DNA of 63,946 bases, filler included, from Sluysia triapertura (taxonomy: Eukaryota), in assembly GCA_046118255.1 (NCBI GenBank). It is 5 parts of 5 records of this genome, joined end to end, with 100 filler letters (N's around TTAATTAATTAA, not from the genome) between each part and the next. Parts side by side here need not be neighbours in the genome. Positions count along the whole stretch, not along the records: positions 11,439 to 24,281 come from JBJNIA010078489.1; 4 more parts are not named here. One strand, given 5' to 3'. Below the pieces are notes generated by a model that was not told the origin of the DNA, made no database searches, and saw nothing but the letters and a program-made list of their open reading frames with translations. The stretch's first letter is position 1; each line of letters begins with the position of its first letter. Shown here piece by piece: positions 11,439-24,281 of the stretch. A program made the position numbers and the translations under genes.

Positions 11439-11785
11439 ACGATCCCTCGTAACTTTTTCATATATTATCTAATCTTATACTCTAATTGTAGGTATCATTC
11501 TTCGAGGTATTCCTAAATACATTTTTATGGCTTCAGTCTTAAGATTGACTGCAAGCAAAGCATAAAGTATGAATGCAATAATGAAAGATGAATGTTGATT
11601 TTAAATTCTTTAATGTCATTATTGTATTTGGAGATTTTAAGATTAATTAAACTGATTTTAGTAATTTTATTCGGTATTTTAGTTGGCTTTCAGTTCTTAT
11701 TGATTTAATTATTTAATTTATTTAATTTAGTGCTTATACTTTCCTTAATAATAGGTATAACAAAATAATATGATCGTGTGATGAA

Positions 11786-12043
11786 TCAGTCATTTGCTTT
11801 TATTGTTTCATTAGCATTAAGTATCCAAGCGTATATAATTGAAAAGTTTGACTCAGGGTAATAATTTAACATGGTAGTTTGTTTCGGTGGAATTAATTCT
11901 AGAACTGTTTCCTTATCGGTCCCGTATCTTATTATAATTGAGTTTTTTGATAATGGATTAGTTACTTTAATTGGATCGATTTCAGTGATTATGGAACAGT
12001 CCATCCATTGTTTGATGAATTTATCATAGAATACATAAGGCAT
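11786..12043 (-). pseudogene. Continuation of the decayed compact ORF array, unknown product
   Basis: 85-aa ORF on the same strand directly downstream of 12204-12956, with stops in between. Confidence 0.35.
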
Positions 12044-12203
12044 TGTTTAAATCCAATAATATTGTGTATGTATTACTCGATTGTTATTTTTACTTGATAT
12101 AATTGAGATTCAAATAAATCTTCGCATTTTATGATCCAATATTTTGTAGTCTTATGTTGTGGAAGTAGTACATAACTTATTTAAGCAACAACTAAGAGAT
12201 AAA

Positions 12204-12956
12204 CTAACTAATTTGCTTATCCACAACTATTATTACGTCAGTCTTAGCTTGAATAGTTATTTGTATATTATTGTAAAACATTTTCCTACTTAACCTATTT
12301 ATGTTTAACTCAGATGAATCAATATTAGTTATTAAACAAATACATAAAAACACTGATGACATTTGTAATTCATTGTAATCCGTATTGTATTCATATATTG
12401 GTGATGTCATTATTGGCGGTAATGGTAGTCCTGGAGGAGGAGCATAAAATCTATTATTTCTTGGAATCGAATAATGATTATCATTATCGTCATTGGAATC
12501 AGAATTAGTATATTTGCATTTATTTATAATGAACATCATAATCATTAGTAAAGTTATTATTAATGCAATAATAAGTAGTGTTGCAGCAATTACCAAAATA
12601 ATTATTGACAGATCCTTTTTCAGTGTATCTATAATTGTAGTTGGCTTTTGAATTCCTTGTATAATAATTTTATCCCGATGTTGAATAAATATTATTATAT
12701 ATCTGTCTTCAGAAAGTAAATAATCTTTGCACATCGTTGCTGGATATTCTATATTAAGTAAAACAGGTTTGTGTAATTCCCATATACTAAAATTAAGTAT
12801 CGCCGGATTGATACATATGTAATGTGCTTTAATGTTCTTAGTTACCTTAATTTGTACTTTTGTATTAAAGTTATAAAAATCCAAGTATTTCGATTTGTAG
12901 ATTCTCTGTGACACATTCGTAATTGATATTAATGTTAGTAAGGTAAGTAACATCAT
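12204..12956 (-). CDS. Intronless type-I membrane-protein-like ORF of unknown family, probably viral/TE accessory and partly decayed
   Basis: 250-aa ORF: hydrophobic N-terminus (MMLLTLLTLISIT), ~95-aa ectodomain, long TM (LSIIILVIAATLLIIALIITLLMIMMFII), tail with Tyr/Pro motifs (HYSIP, YAPPPGLPLPP, IYEY), then a second signal-like segment (MSSVFLCICLIT). Confidence 0.45.
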   Translation of the reverse strand: MMLLTLLTLISITNVSQRIYKSKYLDFYNFNTKVQIKVTKNIKAHYICINPAILNFSIWELHKPVLLNIEYPATMCKDYLLSEDRYIIIFIQHRDKIIIQGIQKPTTIIDTLKKDLSIIILVIAATLLIIALIITLLMIMMFIINKCKYTNSDSNDDNDNHYSIPRNNRFYAPPPGLPLPPIMTSPIYEYNTDYNELQMSSVFLCICLITNIDSSELNINRLSRKMFYNNIQITIQAKTDVIIVVDKQIS

Positions 12957-14401
12957 ACTCGGTACCTATTATTATAACCCTATTACAAGTGATTATGTAG
13001 TAAAAGTAAATAGCATATTGATTATGGTAAAGATTGAGAGTGCAACTATTAAAACATTTTGTATATCTAATCAACTTTTCTTACTTATATTCTTACTTAG
13101 TTTGGTAGCAATATTCGTTATTTTGTTTATTGTAGTAGGTAATGCTGTACCTGTGCTTTCTTCTTAAAACTATCCATAAAATCTATTGTTACTGTCTTAT
13201 TGTAAAGTTTGAACACTATTATTGCGGTATATTGAATTGAATGCTGACATTTGAAAATATTGTCTTTATTATTAATGGTTCAAAATATTTGCAATATATA
13301 TCAAAATTATAATCAGGAATTTTGTTTTTATTATCAATTTCAGCTGTCCAAAATCTTTTGAAGGTATTTGACAGGAAGATGTCTTGTTTAGTATTAGTAT
13401 AATTTGTTAAATTTACTGGATAATGAGTTATCCTTGTTGTTAATTGAAATGGAAATATATATAAATGGAAATTATATAAATGAATCTATTATTTGGAATT
13501 CCTCTTATAAACATTATACTGCTATCAGTAGTATTATTATCATTATCATTATTATCTATTCCTATACCCGAAGTTGAAGAAACCGTGGTATCACACTGTG
13601 GAGGTCAATATACATCTTGCTTTTAACAAAATATTAATGTTTTAACTTATTTTTAATTTTTTATTAAACAAATTTAAAACGTTGATTAAATAAAAATATT
13701 TTAACTTTAATTTTATAACAATTAACAAAAAACAAAAATTTTTAATCAACAAATTAGGCCTAATGCCTTTAAGGAATAAACAATTTAAATAAAACACAAA
13801 ATATGATATTTTATTTAAAACACTGTAAAATAACACAAAGAAATAAATAACATTTACGTCATTGTAGATGAAGGATCTAGAGAGCTGAGAAATTAAGTTA
13901 ATTATGGGATAATTAATTGAAGGCTTTACTGTGTTCATAGCATGAATCTTATTTATAAATAAAATTGAAAAATATAAAATCATTAGGTTTCGCAGTATTT
14001 ATATTATATTTCACATAATTCGACATGTCATGTATTGGTAACAAATTTTGACAACATGGCTTAGTAAATGTTTGATTTCCATTTGGTAATTTTACTTTTG
14101 TTCAATTGAAGTTTATTAGAACTCGGCCATATGAGTGGATAATATAAAGGAATCATTATACAAGTCATTATTACAAAAATCAAAACCAAGGTTTGTACTG
14201 CTTTCATCATTAACGTAACAATTTCATAAATTTCATGGTTAACGTAGTAATAAAAATTGATTTTTTTACCATGTTTATTTTTTATTAATTTAATTTTTTA
14301 GTTATTATTAAACAATTTTTAATAAATATTAATCAAATAAGATTGTGTTATTTAAAATAATGTCTAAGCTTTAGTTATATATAATTAAATTTTGCATGAA
14401 A

Positions 14402-14915
14402 CTAATTTAAAAAATATAGTGATAATTCTTTGGCAAAAATATCTTCTTGATTTTCGAGACTCTTAAAAGGATTTACATCAAAATTTGTTTTCAGCGCTAT
14501 ATAATATTCAAAAAAATCTGTTCCAAGTCCATCAATCAAAATTTTATACTTTTTAAGCATATCTAAAGATTCTTCTAAAGATGTTGGTTGATTCTTGCAA
14601 TGACCGCCATTTCTTGGTTCAATTAATGCTAATTTACGTCGTAGACCATCCATTCCAGCTTCTAGCATAGCAGCAATTACTAAATAAATATTAGCTCTGC
14701 CGGATACAATGCGATTCTCAATAAAATTATGATTATGCGTTTCTGCGCTAGTTTTAACTCGATAACCTACTGTTCTATCTTCATAATTCCAACTAATTTT
14801 ATTTGGTGCCCACGATGCTTTGACAATACGACGATAATAGTTGAATGTTGGATTAAAGAAATCCGTTAATGCTTCGGAATGCTCGATTAATCCAGCTAAA
14901 AGTGTTGACCAGTTT
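14402..14915 (-). pseudogene. Glutamine synthetase type I / lengsin-like C-terminal fragment
   Basis: (KTGQHF)LAGLIEHSEALTDFFNPTFNYYRRIVKASWAPNKISWNYEDRTVGYRV...IENRIVSGRANIYLVIAAMLEAGMDGLRRKL...PTSLEESLDML...GLGTDFFEYYIALK to stop at 14402. This is the GS catalytic-domain C-half; the N-half is absent and a 1-nt deletion lies near 14900. Confidence 0.9.
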
Positions 14916-14916
14916 A

Positions 14917-15774
14917 TGCACAGAACATTTTCTCGATGATTGTAATACAAACAAAACTTGTATTATACATTGTACAATTTCCAAAGATGATTTTGCTATA
15001 AACAAAATACAAATACTTTTTTCAGCATTTTGATAGACTTGGCTAAGTTCAACAGGTTCTGCTGACGAAATTAGCAAAAATAAATTGTAAGCTATCACTC
15101 CACAAAGGTCAATTAAAAGAAGATTATCATCAAGTGCTTCTGTTAATTGCCTAAAATGTAATATTCGCATTTTGTAAAAACCAATTATTGTTACGACTGC
15201 ACTACTGGTTAGTAGAATTCATTCAGATATATGATAGACAATAACAGCTTTATATTTGTCTCTGCGAAACAATATAAATATAGCTAAGCCCACCAAGCTT
15301 GCCAAGAAAAACAAAAGTCCAACAAAAAGACCTTTGTGAGATTTATGACATTTCGGATTGCGAAATTTGATTGGTGGATTATTTGTATGATTTTATGTTT
15401 ATAGGAACTTTTCTATGTAAAGAATGATCATCCGAATTAATACCAGCATGAGTATCACTGTAAATTAATTTATCTTGATATATGTTTTTATAGTTAAGCG
15501 AACGTAAAGATGGCGACAAACTTTCTGTATACATTGTTTGAAAAGTTTGTTTTTTAAAGTAATTTGATTTAATAATTGCTTGTATAATTACCATCGAGTT
15601 TTTGAAGCATCTTATAGAGAATAGCTGCACATATCAGACTGTATTCTATAGCACAAGGAAATAAATATGGTGATACGAGATAAGCAATTTGATTTGAACA
15701 TGTAATTTGAGAAAAATTAGAATGATAACCAGTATCGTTTTGATAATGTAATACTACAAATGAATAATGAATAT
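14917..15774 (-). pseudogene. OTOP: Otopetrin proton-channel internal fragment
   Basis: SPYLFPCAIEYSLICAAILYKM (otopetrin FPCxIEYSL motif), CHKSHKGLFVGLL, LDDNLLLI, SLEIVQCIIQVLFVLQSSRK. In-frame TGA at 15219-15221 plus frameshifts. Starts at acceptor 'ttattttag' (15775-15776). Confidence 0.88.
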
Positions 15775-16899
15775 CTAAAATAATTATTTATTATTAATTT
15801 TTACAATATAAACAAATTTAAAATAAATAATAAAAATAATAAATAATAATTAAATAACAATAATAAATAATAATAGTATTACAAAAGGATATCTAAATAA
15901 TTTTTGACGAGGGAGTTATTAATATATTTATTCTAACAATAAATGAAAATGTAAAGTGAGTCCATCTACGATCCTAGGCTTACATACTTAGGTCAGACCG
16001 TAGGATTGAGGTTTGATAATTTACTTAATTTTAGAAATGTTAACTAAGATACTTATGTGTCCGTGGTTAGTGGTGATAGTAGTAGTACTATAATTTATTA
16101 AACATATGTTGCTTAGATGCTATGGGATATGTATTATGACCGATTAGTATGTAATAATGTATTATTGTAATAATCTATTACAATAATCTATTGTAATAAT
16201 GTAAAGTAAATAGAGATTAAAAAAATAGTTGTTATTGTTATTGTAATTATTTTATTAACTTTTTTATTATTATTTTAAAGTATTATTAAAGTATTGTTAT
16301 TTTCAAATATTATTAAAATATTATTATTCTAAAGGTATTTATTAAATATATTATTATTAAAGACAATTATTATTAATCATTAAATATTATTAATCTAGTG
16401 TAATTTAAACTTATAAGTATTATAATCGATGACCTAATACGTAGAGAGATGATAAATGGTGAACGCTTTGTTACTTAGTCACAAAAAATTTTGTACACAT
16501 TGTTTTTAAAAGTTTAGTGTTATCATTAATTGTTACCATTATTCACTGTTATATATTTATTTGATTTTTCATTAAAACGTTGATAAACGAAAATATACTC
16601 AACTTATAATAAATTCGACTTATCTAATCATTGAACTATAATTTAGAAAAACATCTTATTTTACAGTTGTCCAAACAAATTTAATCGTTATTTAGTTAAT
16701 TAAGGCATACTTTTGAAAAAGATAATTTAAAAAATTTAATTTAATATTTATCAAACTTCTATTTAGTAAAATTTCGTTACGGATTTAATTTATTTAATCA
16801 AAAACATTGAAGTACATATATAATAATATTAATATTTAGAATTTATATATCATATTTGTATATATCCTATTTTAACATTTTGTATATAATTTTGAAAGA

Positions 16900-17850
16900 T
16901 CCTCTAGTTTAAAATTCAAAATAATCAATTCAATAACATTATTACATTATTTAACATTTTACATCGTTACCTTTTCAAAATTTATCAAAACCTTTTTCAT
17001 ATTTTACATTGTTTTAGATCCATTAAAACCATTTTTCATACTTCAAAACATTTTAAATTCACAATGTTTCAACATCCAAATAATACTTACATTCAAACCA
17101 TTAATGTACATTTCAAATCTCATTTAAAACATGTTATCTCACAATCCTACAGTATTTGAATCACAATTTACATCTTAAATTATTGTAGAAAACATACTAA
17201 AATTAATTCAAAACAATTTAAATTCACAATCCTTCAACAATCAATTTTCAACACCATAGAAAAACATTATAATCACATTTTAAATTTATTTTTGAAAAAA
17301 TATTAATGGAATTTTAGTTATTTTTATGTAAAGAAGTAGAACAAGTAAAAGAAAGTTCATGTAACATAAAATTAAAAGAATTATGCATTTTAATTATATT
17401 CTTTTTATTTTATTATAATTATTATTCTTATTTATTTATTTATTTATTCATTCTTCTTATCATTATTATTATTTTAGTACATTTATTATTATACCATTTT
17501 TATTGCCATAATCATTATTATTTTTAGATTAAATGGCTTTGTTGATTTTAGTTACTATAAAATAAATTAAACGGAATCTGTCATTGCCAAACAAATATTC
17601 ACACATGCACATATATAGTTGGAAGTGTGTTTCCACAGGCAATCAATATAACTAACTTTGAACACTTTTAATTTACTGCACATACAAGCATACAAGGTTA
17701 CAATTTAATCTATGATAATATAGCATTTGGTTTGGCATCCAATCAAGTCCATCTCTACGTTGTAATTCTACTTATCGGGTTTGACGTCCAATCATCATTG
17801 ATATCATTATGTTATTCAGTTAAAAATTAAAGATTCTGAAAGGATTTTTA
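16900..17850 (+). repeat. Copy of C/A-rich interspersed element with promoter-like 3' module
   Basis: 17050-17150 aligns by eye with 21217-21330 ('cattttaaat.cacaat...tactta.at..aaaccatta...gtaca.ttcaaat.t.atttaaaacat'). Followed by TGTCA, two CCAATC and a TATA-like 'catataag' near 17895. Confidence 0.6.
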
Positions 17851-18305
17851 ATGGATTTGTAGGGAAATTACACAAAATTCATCACATTTCATCACATATA
17901 AGCACTTCTCATATACACCGACTATTAAACAAACTACTAAACTCATTCAAAAAACAAACATGATCATCACACTTAATTATCTTTAACTACAGCTATTATT
18001 TTTACAATTCAAATCGTATTAATAATATACATATATAATAATTATAGTCATTATTGTTACATAATATAAATATCAGATAATAACTTTTATAATAATTTTC
18101 ATAATAAATTTCTACATCAACATTTCAGTATTAATAAATATAATAACCATGTTATTGTTATCATTATTATCATTTCTTTTATCTTTAGTATCAATCTTTC
18201 TATTTTTTTGTTTTTCTTCAATTTTTTTAATATGCTACACAATATCTCTAATCCTATAAATCCAACCATATCTCTTCATCCTACCAACCTTTACTTTTTC
18301 AACAG

Positions 18306-18619
18306 AGCTGTATTATGTCTTCTGTTGCAAGTACAAGCATCATCACAAACATCATCACAACCACCATCGCTATCACCATTTTTCACTCGTCATCGTATAT
18401 GTGCAAATTGACATAGAATTGGTACCAATGTGAACACTGGAGCTTTCTCATCTCCTTCAAATTCTCCGCATATTGTGGCAAGTAGTAGTGTTCTTAATAC
18501 ACCAATATTAAGACAGAGAATACATTATGATTCAGATTTCGTATCTCCTCCGAGTACGAAAAGAAATATTACAATTGTTAGATCTGCCCAATCAGAAGAT
18601 GATGATGAATATAATAATA
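18306..18619 (+). pseudogene. Orphan exon-like coding fragment (Ser/Pro-rich, unknown parent)
   Basis: Acceptor 'tttttcaacag' (ends 18305) and donor 'gtatgt' (18620). One frame is open across the exon except a TGA at 18409 (RHRICAN*HRIG, plausibly CGA>TGA). Confidence 0.45.
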
Positions 18620-19766
18620 GTATGTAAACTTTTTTTGATGCTTTTAATAGTTTCTGATATGTTGCTAATATCTTTATATAAACAATTTGTATATGTAATG
18701 AACCAGCATTTATACTTAGAATCTTAAATGTATTATTATCAATCATTATAGCATTATTATAAATTACCGTAGCTGAATACCACACATGTGATTGGTGAAA
18801 CTAATGTATTTAGTGTCAGAGATTGTGGAATAATTCAGTTAAAAAATGTTTCGTGTTATCCACATTTTAACGGACTCGCAAATTTTAAATATATTATTTT
18901 AATTATTAGTGATTAATATTTGACGAATACATAACTAAGTATTGTATTTAGTAATTCTTGTTGGTAATTGTAAGATCCTCTAGTGGATTTAAATATAAAT
19001 ATGGATTATATAGGATTTATTTTCAAATTAAGTGAATCTTTTCTATTTCCAATAATTATCTCAATTACAATAATAATAATAATTATTATTTTATTGATGG
19101 TTTCAATTTTTTCTATGAATAGTATTTATTTTAAATTTTCTAACAAAACTAATTTTAATTTCAACTACGTAATTTAAAATATTAAATCGATAAGCTTGTT
19201 CAATATATTTTTACTCGTCAAATGAGTTTATCAAATTTAATAATTCAGAAACATGTTAAATTAAATTATACTTAATCGTGTTTTCTATGAAAATTAATTT
19301 AAATTATGTTGATGGTTTATATAATTTATACTTTCTTAAGGAAATTTCCATTTCTCGTGTCATTTTACTAATAAAAAATAGGTAATAAGTGTTGAATACA
19401 TGATAATAATTCAAAATTTGTCATATTTTTAAAGCAAATAAATACATTAAATCCATTATTTATACTTTTAAATCACATTTTAAAATTAATTAAACGTTTC
19501 AATTTTTCAGTTTAAACTTTACAATATTACATTTATCTATTCGGTCTTTAATGTAGCGATTTTCTCTATTACTGAGATTAATTTTATAACTCGATTATGA
19601 ATTTTTAATGTAACGTCTTTTGCTTTCATTTGTATTTTTAACCGTACTTTCTTGCTTATATTAAACGATCTTAAGGTTTATTTTAGGAATTTAATGTTTT
19701 TAATGGATTTTTTCTATTAAATTTAGTGAATTTAAAGGATCGCGATGACGTTGATGGCAAACTAAC

Positions 19767-21120
19767 ATCACTTCCCATTTATAAAAGTTGTCCACAAATT
19801 TTTAAAGAGAATTAAGATTGTAGAAAATATTTCGCGGATTTAGTATTTATTGTTGGTAAATATGTGTACATTGTTATACTATCATGCAATAATACTATAT
19901 TATGATATCAACAAATATCGTAATTATTAGGTAAACCAGTATAGCGTGAGTGTTACTTAAATCATTCAAATTGTACTGGTCCACGTCGAAATATAGGGTA
20001 TTAGTTGGCCGAATTCATCCAAATTGACTCCTGGAGGTAAATGTTTCGGATTTGTTTGTCTAACTAGAGAGCCTGGATATTAGTAGTTTGGTTTGTAGAA
20101 TTCGTCGTGGAATTGATCTGGAGTATTGGACTGTTTGGAGTTGACAAGTTGTGGGAGAAGAGGAAAAGAGGCGGGGTTTAGTATAAGATGGGCTGAGCAT
20201 GTAGGGGAATTAAAAAAGAAAAAGAAAGAGTACCAGACAAGTTTTGAGGAAGGAAAGATGGCATTTTGAACGAGATCTATACAAGGCATCTTAAGCAGAA
20301 AATGGTAAAGTAATTTCAGCACGTGTTCGTTCTAGTAAAAGAATCAGCGAAAGAGAAAGAAATAAGATGCGTGCTAGTGAGATTTATTATCCCTCTCAAC
20401 CAACCATAAAGAATATTAATGTGTGGTAACAAGAAACCAAGAATTTGTTGTGTAATGAGATCATTCAAAAGCTTCTAATATTTTCTATATCCACGCTGAT
20501 GAAAGATTTTCATCATCTAACCCATGTATTTCCTTACAAATATTTTGAACTCGAACTCGCTTTGTCTATGGTGTGGAGTCTTTAGTGATATGGCATAAAA
20601 CCTAACTGAATAATTTGGTAATTATTATTCACGTCCAAAACATGGTGAAAATCAACAAATATCAACCTACTTTCGTCAAAAACAGGAAGTGATGGAATGT
20701 GTGTCTATGTCAAGCATTCCCGCACTTGTACGTATGTGGAATATAAAGTAGTTAAGCACGATTTGGACTTCAGAGGAACAGGAAAAAGTACTGTAAAAGT
20801 TGTGGAATATTCGTCGGCCTCTATTCTGATTTAGCAAGATTTGGTAATCTTATCAAGTTTTAATCAGGAATATCAATAAACTCGAAAGAAGAGAGAAGAT
20901 CATTGACAATAACCGAAGGAAATGCGGATTGCAAGCTAAATAGGTAGGTTGCAAAGTTTTCGTCAATTTCTGATTTAAGAGGATTATGAGTGGATTTAGA
21001 ATTTAAGAATAAAGTAGAATGAATATCCTTCTTACAAAACCTGTCAATACTCCCATAAAAAGACTTGATTTGGGTAGAAATTCTAGAAATATACAATGTA
21101 CGAAGGAAGAGATAACACAA
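19767..21120 (-). mobile_element. 3' part of an LTR retroelement: decayed env-like ORF, polypurine tract and start of 3' LTR
   Basis: ~1.2 kb higher-GC broken ORF ending in a hydrophobic segment (ISTWTSTI*MI*VTLTLYWFT), then 'aaatgggaagtga' (19780-19768) directly followed by TGTTAG (19767), a typical Ty3/gypsy PPT-LTR junction. Confidence 0.45.
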
Positions 21121-21129
21121 AATACAAAA

Positions 21130-22068
21130 AAATTAGTAAGTTATTTTACATTTCTTAACATTCCACATTTTACCTTTCAAGATTCAATTCATTAAACATT
21201 TTTTTACACTTTATAGCATTTTAAATCCACAATCTCATAACATTAAAATTATACTTAGATCTAAAACCATTAAACGTACACTTCAAATTTAATTTAAAAC
21301 ATTTCAAGTTCACAGTCCTTCAACATTCACATCATTTATATTATTGAAAAACTTTAAATTTTCATTTTAAAATCATTTTAAACATCGTAATCAAAATGGA
21401 ATTTCTTTAACATCTTTAACTACGTTATTATTATTTTTTACTTATACATAATGCTTTCTAAAATATAATATGAATTAAAGATATGTAAAGAATTTTAAAA
21501 GAATTTGTAGTCATTAAATATTTCAAAGAAGATTTATGGTTTAAAGCAAAGTATAATTAAAAAGAATTAAAAGATGTATTTAAATAATAAAAAAAGTTTA
21601 TTTTTTTAATATTTTCATTTTTGTTTTTATTATTATTTTATTTTTTTATTAATTTCATTTTATTATTATTAAACTTATTTTTTATTATTACAATTATTAT
21701 CCTTAACATTTTCATTATCATTATTATCAATATTAATCATTGTTATTTGCACACAAAAAGTTAATTTTATTTCTGTCAATCTCGACAGTTCATTTTGTAC
21801 AAACATTGAATTGCCTGTCACCATTTCATAATCACTACCACATTAGTTTTAAAAACTACATGGTGACAGGCATGCATTTTAGTCATTGTTTTAATTGTGC
21901 AGCGTTTCAATTTCCCTGGATTGGGGTTGGTTGAATCAGTGTTCATTCTGCTCTTGTGCATTGATTCTGACTCACCAATCAATCATTGGCAATTCGTGGT
22001 GTTATTCAATAATTATTAAAAATTAGTTCACAAATTTAAAAGTTAAAAAATTTTATTGATTTTTTCAG
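21130..22068 (+). repeat. Copy of C/A-rich element with double-hairpin promoter-like module
   Basis: Similar to 16900-17850. Perfect 13-bp IR tgcctgtcaccat (21812-21824)/atggtgacaggca (21860-21872); second IR gattgg..gaatcagtg/cattgattc..ccaatc (21919-21980); acceptor 'ttttttcag' near 22068. Confidence 0.6.
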
Positions 22069-22178
22069 TTTAATCAGAGTAAAACAGAAATTATCAATTA
22101 GTGAACAATTTTTTGTTCTTACACTTAATGAATTTTATAAACGATAACTATCAATTGAATTATGCAAGTAGAACAAAT

Positions 22179-22403
22179 GACCCTAAAAGAATGCACATAT
22201 CAAATATTCCATTTAGCTATCGTGAAGTACTGAAAGGCTATGGTGTAATTCTTGATGTGGAAATTATTTTCAATAAAAAAGAATCAAAATGATTCGGCTT
22301 TGTTACTTTAGAAAACGCATTTGATACAGATAAAGCAAAAAATGATTTAAATGGAAAAGAAGTAGAAGAACGTAATCTGGAAATTAATCTTGCTACTCTC
22401 AGA
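22179..22403 (+). pseudogene. RBFOX: RBFOX (Fox-1) RRM fragment, intronless
   Basis: [69 protein letters not shown] versus Fox-1 PKRLHVSNIPFRFR...[25 protein letters not shown]...EGRKIEVNNATAR. Internal deletion and Gly>TGA at 22290. Confidence 0.9.
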
Positions 22404-22689
22404 TCTATCTTCAATAAAAGAAAAAAATATGTTTTAGATGAAACTAATGCTTTCAATTTGGCAAATACTGAAGTGTGGAATAAATTACAATTTCACCCAT
22501 TCAGAGAAATTTGTTGCCATTTTCATTTTGATAATGCTTTTAGAAATGCAAGAATTTCCAAAAGCGTGCAGTCATTGTAAAGTAATATGGATAAGCTGGA
22601 ATCCGTAAAAAGAAAGAGCTCTGTTTCTTCAGATATGGTTATCCCACCAAATATAACATTTGATGCACAACCAAAACATGAAAATTATG

Positions 22690-22780
22690 AGTAGCAACAG
22701 AGTCGGGATATGTCAATCCACTGCAGACGATTTTGGAATATGTCGTAGATTTGGCTATTCATGCCCGTACAGCCATAATA
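22690..22780 (+). pseudogene. CCCH-type zinc-finger-like fragment
   Basis: GICQSTADDFGICRRFGYSCPYSH (C-x9-C-x6-C-x3-H). Confidence 0.4.
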
Positions 22781-24281
22781 GTTTCGAAACTAATTATAAT
22801 CCTATCAGTGATCAAATGATCATATTAATAGATTCAATAAATTATTACTTTATTTACGAATCAATCCCACAAATTCGCTATCTACAAGTTAAGCAATAAA
22901 CATAAGGATCATCAGATGACTCCGAACTACAGATTAATGTCAAGAGTAAACTTTATTGTTATAAAAATTTTTATATATAGTTACAACTTTTTTTAAGAAC
23001 TTGCTTTGTGAAACAATCGCTGGTTGTCCAAGACGCAAGTCATTCGCCCATATTCCTGATAAATCAATAATCGTTAAAACGTCTACTATTAAAATTTATG
23101 TTAAAAAATAAAACTTCAGAACTTAGTCTTAAAAATTTGTTGTATGAATTTTTTTGTAAAGTTGTCATAAATGTATTTATTTTCCTTCAAAACAATTTAA
23201 TTATAAAATTTTAATTGCTAAATATATAATAACAAAAAATATTAATAATAAAAACGTTCCATCAACCCTCAAATACATCAGTCGAAGTAATGAGGTGTTG
23301 GTTTTTTGATTTTTATGATTATTTGTTGTTAACCTCAAAATATGACGTCTTAAATTATTTATTTTGTTTTTTGTGTAATTATAATTATTGTTTAAAATTT
23401 TTCAATAAAGATTTTGTAAATTATAGTTTTTTAATGAATTTTACGCTAACCAATATAATCCAGGACCTTAAGCCCGATGCTCTTTCTAAATTAGACACCT
23501 ATATCTTTCTAAATTTATGTAATTTCGTTAATATGACACTAGTGAAATTTCTACTTCATCGTTTTTAAATATCATTTATTATGGCATTTCGTTTTGAAAT
23601 AGTGTAAGTCAAAGTTATCCAAAAATTAACTGAAGCGACCCATAATGAAATTCATAAGCTTGTGATTTTCACAGAAATCAAGTAGATACCGTTAAGTAGC
23701 TTTAAATCGAATTTTATTATGTAATGTTTAATATATTTATTTATTAATTAAATATATCAATTATGTCGTATCCAGAAGAAATTATAGAAGCATAATGAAG
23801 CAATAATAATAATAATAATAATATACATAATTCTCATTTAATGCGGCTGTCAAGAAATTAAATTATGTATTTTTGTTACGAAACCCAATCAAATGAAGTA
23901 GCCAATTCCCATTTCATTGGATGTTTGGAAATGTAATGCGTTCAAATGTGCTGACATGTGTTTGAAAATTAAAAATAAACAAATAACATTTCGGAAAATA
24001 AAAATTACTCACAATAAACAAATTCGCAATTAAAAAATTAGTAGAGAAGAAAGTTCAGCCGAGCTAAAAGGTACTATTAAGTGTCACGTAAAATAGTTAC
24101 AAATTAAACATTTATGCAGCATATGGACGTACTAGATGTTATGATAATGATAAATTATAATTATGTAAATGTTAAAGAATTTAATCCAGTAATATAAAAT
24201 TCTCGAAGTATTGCATTCTTTTCCTGGTTGGTAATTAATTTAAGATATTTCTCATCTTCATCACTGCTAATTTCTCTTGAG

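Follow-up and report, generated by a model that had tools for sequence, protein, structure and literature searches.

Whether two unrelated genes have been joined into a working fusion gene is the question raised by a stretch of the Sluysia triapertura genome in which the coding sequences of an otopetrin and a glutamine synthetase (GS) abut. The locus lies in a window of 63,946 nt (the whole stretch of DNA that was analysed, filler between its five parts included), within a piece at positions 11439-24281 (12.8 kb) of an AT-rich animal genome (~25% GC). GC content across this piece ranges from 19 to 38% in 500-nt windows, and the otopetrin-GS mosaic forms a compact island of 1.4 kb (~30-33% GC) with flanks of ~20% GC on either side. 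All features of the mosaic are on the minus strand, with the otopetrin and GS parts in the same sense (Table 1).

Table 1. Positions of the features at the otopetrin-GS locus, numbered along the window
Feature	Position	Strand	Evidence
Otopetrin piece A, profile 160-198	15593..15709	-	E 1.1e-9, 38.1 bits
84-codon open stretch, frame 1	15382..15633	-	Chance ~4e-4; no credible Pfam match
Otopetrin piece B, profile 226-271, frame 2	15231..15359	-	E 9.8e-8, 31.8 bits
In-frame TGA in otopetrin homology	15219..15221	-	Five codons for five profile positions (272-276)
Otopetrin piece C, profile 277-369	14916..15215	-	E 3.8e-12, 46.3 bits
Junction zone, frames offset by +1 nt	14899..14928	-	Pfam limits, alignments of relatives, three-frame translation
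GS C-terminal ~165 codons, type-I / lengsin-like	14405..14911	-	Gln-synt_C profile 177-333 plus C-terminal tail
Stop in the otopetrin frame, 20 codons downstream of the junction	14853..14855	-	Frame listing
GS native stop TAG	14402..14404	-	Level with C-termini of relatives
Two AATAAA motifs, then an A7 run, ~135 nt past the GS stop	14261..14286	-	Possible poly(A) remnant, not above chance

The surroundings of the mosaic hold further features of their own. On the same strand, downstream of the mosaic, a 253-codon open frame (12207-12965, 759 nt) is very unlikely to have arisen by chance at the local composition; it encodes a single hydrophobic segment of transmembrane type and a PPxY-like tail rich in proline, matches no Pfam family, and is probably a real exon or gene. 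Two plus-strand direct repeats at 17018-17292 and 21187-21385, with ~76% identity in pieces of 137 and 95 nt, are separated by ~4.1 kb and may represent an old repeat or element; between them lies an island of 34-38% GC (19939-20938) with no Pfam or Rfam match. Rfam searches of the piece (11439-24281) on either side of 15812-15860 gave no match.

The otopetrin part is matched by the family profile (PF03189) in three collinear pieces spanning 15709-14916, each above the gathering score (cut-off 27.8 bits). Together these matches cover positions 160-369 of the 434 in the profile; the otopetrin coding sequence as a whole amounts to ~870 nt. The reading frame is interrupted along the way: piece A sits within a frame-0 stop-free stretch (15572-15787), a first +1 frame change within 15633-15572 leads into the frame-1 open stretch, which is probably a variable otopetrin loop, and a second +1 frame change within 15392-15382 leads into piece B. 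Frame-restoring GT-AG intervals can be modelled (67 nt, 15591-15525; 112 nt, 15443-15332), but 1-nt frameshifts fit better than introns, because the open stretch in frame 1 reaches 36 codons further upstream than the first modelled acceptor and because piece B begins nine codons upstream of the second. The TGA that separates piece B from piece C is a nonsense codon rather than part of an intron, because the five codons there cover exactly as many profile positions; a mini-intron that includes this TGA was ruled out on the same count, as well as by local GT-AG intervals that are not multiples of three.

The remainder of the channel, profile 1-159 and 370-434, was not found by Pfam scans of 23 other stop-free segments of the piece (at least 35 aa each), taken from either strand and from either side of the mosaic. 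Otopetrin proton channels are thus resembled in that the middle of the PF03189 profile is covered in order, whereas the full-length, uninterrupted 12-helix protein is lacking: both ends are missing, and the sequence carries one TGA and two frame changes. The otopetrin part is an internal, decayed fragment with no recognisable 5′ or 3′ end.

The GS part is in a different state. It matches Gln-synt_C (PF00120; E 7.6e-34, 117.7 bits; open frame 14402-14950) only over profile positions 177-333 of 344, within a stop-free stretch of 186 codons (14405-14962, 558 nt without a frameshift; listed ORF 14950-14402). At this composition, 186 open codons would be expected by chance with P ~4e-8, and the remaining two frames across the stretch contain 17 and 19 stops. 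A tblastn search of the piece, for which eight relatives 137-448 aa long served as queries, matched no more than the C-terminal ~165-190 residues of these, and only at 14992-14411; over the whole piece there was no second GS segment, and within 9.3 kb upstream no further GS exon. What is kept is therefore the C-terminal ~40% of the enzyme; with its N-terminal (beta-grasp) domain and half of its catalytic domain gone, the locus cannot encode a synthetase.

An exhaustive HMMER search with the GS piece returned 2793 relatives with a top identity of 61%, the best of which (P0001-P0004 and P0006, 45-61% identity) share motifs and the C-terminus with it. In a tree, the GS part is sister to the P0001-P0004 group on a terminal branch of 0.65, which is long but not exceptional. 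Of 31 columns with at least 90% conservation across 26 relatives it retains 29, a number that falls in the spread shown by those relatives; the two losses are an A to D change and a C to Y change in the NCYRR motif, and the arginines and the glutamate of the catalytic motifs are present. In its grouping with these intron-bearing eukaryotic relatives, the GS part resembles animal type-I, lengsin-like GS; unlike animal type-I GS, the mosaic holds only profile 177-344. The closest solved structures by sequence are those of bacterial type-I GS, which match at E ~5e-15 (4lnf, E 4.6e-15, aligned over approximately residues 273-420). That the GS piece came from bacteria or by horizontal transfer was ruled out, since the contigs of the nearest relatives carry GT-AG introns of 44-45 nt; a copepod transcript among the relatives is further evidence against it. 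These intron-bearing relatives and the copepod one, together with the presence of RBFOX and otopetrin genes, suggest that the host is an invertebrate. Judged from its sequence, the GS fragment appears to have undergone little decay, which would fit a young pseudogene and, equally, a still-constrained exon. The contrast between three lesions in ~870 nt of otopetrin and none in ~510 nt of GS is itself uninformative (P ~0.17).

At the junction, the otopetrin homology ends between ~14928 and 14916 (last Pfam-aligned codon 14918-14916), and the GS homology starts between 14911 and 14899, possibly at 14932 (first Pfam-aligned codon 14911-14909). Most of the best 150 of the 2793 GS relatives align from query residues 16-18 (14905-14899); a few alignments extend to residues 4-11, and two conserved columns upstream of residues 16-18 are not kept in the mosaic. 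This leaves 0-16 nt that are assignable to neither parent (4-16 nt when counted from the last Pfam-aligned otopetrin codon to the first Pfam-aligned GS codon or to 14899), and no intron-sized or intergenic spacer. A preliminary description of the locus had reported otopetrin and GS sequence in the same sense within one interval, with neither an intron nor intergenic DNA between them and with a GS part that is open for ~165 codons and runs to its apparent native stop. All of this is borne out by the profile matches, the 0-16 unassigned nucleotides, the 186-codon stretch and a TAG level with the C-termini of relatives. The same description had the otopetrin frame pass directly into GS, and here the sequence reads differently: three-frame translation gave no single ORF across the junction, GS is shifted by +1 nt relative to otopetrin, and the otopetrin frame runs into a stop of its own. 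Followed downstream, the frame passes from 0 to 1 to 2 in otopetrin and then to 0 for GS, each step being +1. The residues KTGQHF, which had been taken as the start of GS, are in the third frame, which is that of neither gene and has stops on both sides of them. Nor does a mid-exon joining describe the GS side well, where the homology sets in no more than ~5 codons away from the point at which an exon begins in both of the nearest relatives with genomic DNA.

The reading as a fusion gene is unsupported, given the frame offset between the parts, the broken otopetrin and the truncation of both genes. "Chimera" is an apt term for the DNA, in which unrelated fragments lie in the same sense with practically no spacer, but does not extend to a translatable fusion, as the product would be out of frame, broken and truncated. 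We consider it likely that this non-functional mosaic is a chimeric pseudogene of an ordinary kind rather than a functioning fusion gene.

Searches of wider collections gave little for either part. JGI metagenomes held no match to the junction pattern or to the otopetrin piece, and no otopetrin in the PDB matched the 121-aa piece. Word-based protein searches with the otopetrin and GS pieces were blank, in a length window that leaves out full-length proteins, and Atlas look-ups recovered only generic GS fragments and nematode membrane proteins.

A further degraded gene copy was observed in the same piece, on the strand opposite to the mosaic. An RBFOX/ASD-1-type RRM at 22158-22400 (+) is intronless and decayed; its halves match residues 22-69 and 71-107 of PDB entry 2err (E 2e-7 each) with a 5-residue gap, and a TGA (22290-22292) replaces residue 70, between SK and FGFV of the RNP1 motif. 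It has the look of another gene copy in decay, and possibly of a processed one. Just downstream, 22700-22790 (+) shows a weak match to an unkempt-like CCCH zinc finger (PF23035/PF25427; E ~1e-3, below the cut-off). The nonsense codons in the otopetrin part (15221-15219) and in the RRM copy are both TGA, although TAA would be expected to be commoner from decay in AT-rich DNA (n = 2). TGA as a sense codon finds no support: the GS part encodes Trp by TGG and is free of in-frame TGA, and a sample of two is too small to judge from.

Clues to the origin of the mosaic come from the genomic DNA of two of the closest GS relatives, L002 (27% GC) and L003. In both, an AG directly precedes the homologous exon, whose first codons read IGK(Y/H)W and lead into LAG; this exon start is five codons upstream of LAG, where the solid homology of the mosaic begins, and falls inside the junction zone. 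Both relatives also have a GT-AG intron of 44-45 nt after DW(F/Y)(I/V)(K/R), a point at which the GS part is continuous. Introns of this kind are not universal, because L001, a more distant relative, is intronless over 377 codons. The mini-introns were located at 706-741 in L002 and 586-633 in L003, and prokaryote-style gene calls on these contigs treat them differently, P0002 stopping in the mini-intron and P0004 reading through. The coincidence with an exon start and the missing intron, both judged against these relatives, hint at an origin from spliced RNA, as a retrocopy or by template switching.

Our tentative first choice for this origin, held at somewhat short of even confidence, is RNA-mediated: a template switch by reverse transcriptase between two spliced mRNAs. 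The reverse transcriptase of a retroelement would start on the 3′ end of the GS mRNA and switch template to the otopetrin mRNA, and the product would read 5′-otopetrin fragment-GS 3′ end-3′, spacer-free. Such an origin is somewhat supported because the GS part reaches its native stop, lacks the intron of its relatives and starts near their exon start, because ~870 nt of otopetrin coding sequence contain no convincing intron, and because a second intronless, decayed copy, that of the RBFOX/ASD-1 RRM, is present in the same piece. A template switch is somewhat favoured over deletion or end-joining of DNA.

There is precedent for such products. Template switching by LINE reverse transcriptase has given rise to U6-L1 chimeras in mammals and to bi- and tripartite chimeras in Magnaporthe (PMC2104539). 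In chimeric retrogenes, reverse transcription of one mRNA begins from its 3′ end and then jumps to another RNA, leaving copies that are "directly fused to each other" (PMC2104539). The mosaic is like them in its unrelated components, which would be copies of two transcripts, fused in one orientation with no spacer into a non-coding product, with a 3′ component that reaches its native 3′ end and a 5′ component that is a truncated internal piece. It is unlike them in that neither a poly(A) tail nor a target-site duplication nor a LINE close by could be established at the mosaic, and in that both components would be mRNAs of protein-coding type, whereas in the known cases one partner is usually an abundant small RNA or a retroelement. 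No reverse transcriptase was seen in the piece, and self-comparison, with 15812-15860 masked, revealed no second copy of the mosaic within it.

Next in line, and in our estimate rather unlikely, is an event at the DNA level, in which same-strand otopetrin and GS genes, either neighbours or brought together by segmental duplication, were joined by a deletion or by non-homologous end-joining and then decayed. This would account for the shared orientation and the lack of a spacer and would explain the junction equally simply, and random breaks give an out-of-frame join two times in three. The marks of retroposition are also not above chance: the putative poly(A) remnant is set against 52 AATAAA motifs on this strand of the piece, no flanking direct repeat was longer than in shuffled sequence, and a target-site duplication was not found around the mosaic. 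Acceptor-like "ttttag" sequences at the 5′ edge of the otopetrin part (15776-15775) and just inside GS (14897-14896) would suit genomic parents, and the modelled introns of 67 and 112 nt would restore the otopetrin frame, so that a genomic origin of the otopetrin part is conceivable. Those introns, however, fit the overlaps of open frames and the Pfam limits less well than 1-nt frameshifts do, and the 8.5 kb upstream, scanned in segments of at least 35 aa, gave none of the otopetrin exons (profile 1-159) that should have survived a local deletion. A DNA-level join would also have to accommodate a GS part that lacks the intron of both close relatives and whose homology starts beside their exon start, a position that a random break would meet by chance with a probability of ~0.1-0.2.

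An artefact, in which a chimeric read or a mis-join made the junction and the frame shifts are consensus errors, appears improbable. The junction is without independent support: 58% of the words sampled from 13900-16400 occur in a single run (contigs, possibly the source sample) and in no RNA run, and the exact ORFs of the locus are absent from the public gene collection. The three frame changes are, moreover, all +1 and near short A-runs. Mis-joins, though, arise at repeats, and this junction is in unique, coding-like sequence; a 1.4 kb island of higher GC in AT-rich flanks is as expected for an inserted or relic unit, and a substitution to TGA is atypical of consensus error. General indel noise in the assembly is unlikely, given that two neighbouring long frames, GS with 558 nt and 12207-12965 with 759 nt, run through intact.

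Even less probable is that the GS part is a living terminal exon, either of a GS-like gene with exons beyond the piece or of a new chimeric transcript, with a putative acceptor at 14897-14896 and the otopetrin relic in an intron or the 5′ region of that gene. Its 186 open codons and conserved columns, including the catalytic-motif arginines and glutamate, would be explained in this way, as would a pyrimidine-rich "cacttttag" directly before the AGLIEH codons, and a GT-AG interval of 31 nt (14926-14896) would bring the otopetrin and GS frames into phase. That interval is shorter than the 44-45 nt introns of the relatives and has a poor donor, however, and the acceptor is ~6 codons off the intron position of the two closest relatives. 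The otopetrin frame is in any case closed upstream by the TGA and two frameshifts, the 9.3 kb upstream contain no further GS exon, and a GS without its N-terminal domain and half of its catalytic domain cannot be a synthetase. Fainter still are the joint chances that the mosaic is a retrocopy of a spliced chimeric transcript (an otopetrin exon plus the penultimate GS exon, by read-through or trans-splicing) or a transcribed young chimeric gene, the +1 offset in the latter being removed by the 31-nt mini-intron or by a consensus error in an A-run, such as that at 14915-14913.

Capture of gene fragments by DNA transposons (Pack-MULE / Pack-TIR and Helitrons; for metazoan Pack-TIRs see PMC8277862) was rejected as a source of the mosaic on the evidence of the flanks and of the rest of the piece. 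Such elements likewise carry unrelated host-gene fragments, often in one orientation and usually decaying as pseudogenes, but the terminal inverted repeats, target-site duplications and further copies of Pack-TIR or Helitron capture were not found around 13700-16600. The longest inverted match between the flanks was 11 nt (shuffle mean 11.4), direct terminal repeats were also at shuffled level and the Rfam search was blank.

If the locus is as it appears, it is one more chimeric pseudogene, which could serve to mark retroposition or rearrangement in the lineage. It is also a warning for automatic annotation, which could call a false otopetrin-GS "fusion protein" here. If transcripts crossed the junction, the locus would be a datable case of the birth of a new gene by the joining of exons from unrelated genes; and if the mosaic were a retrocopy of a chimeric transcript or a young gene, a preserved C-terminal module of GS would be expressed in a new context.
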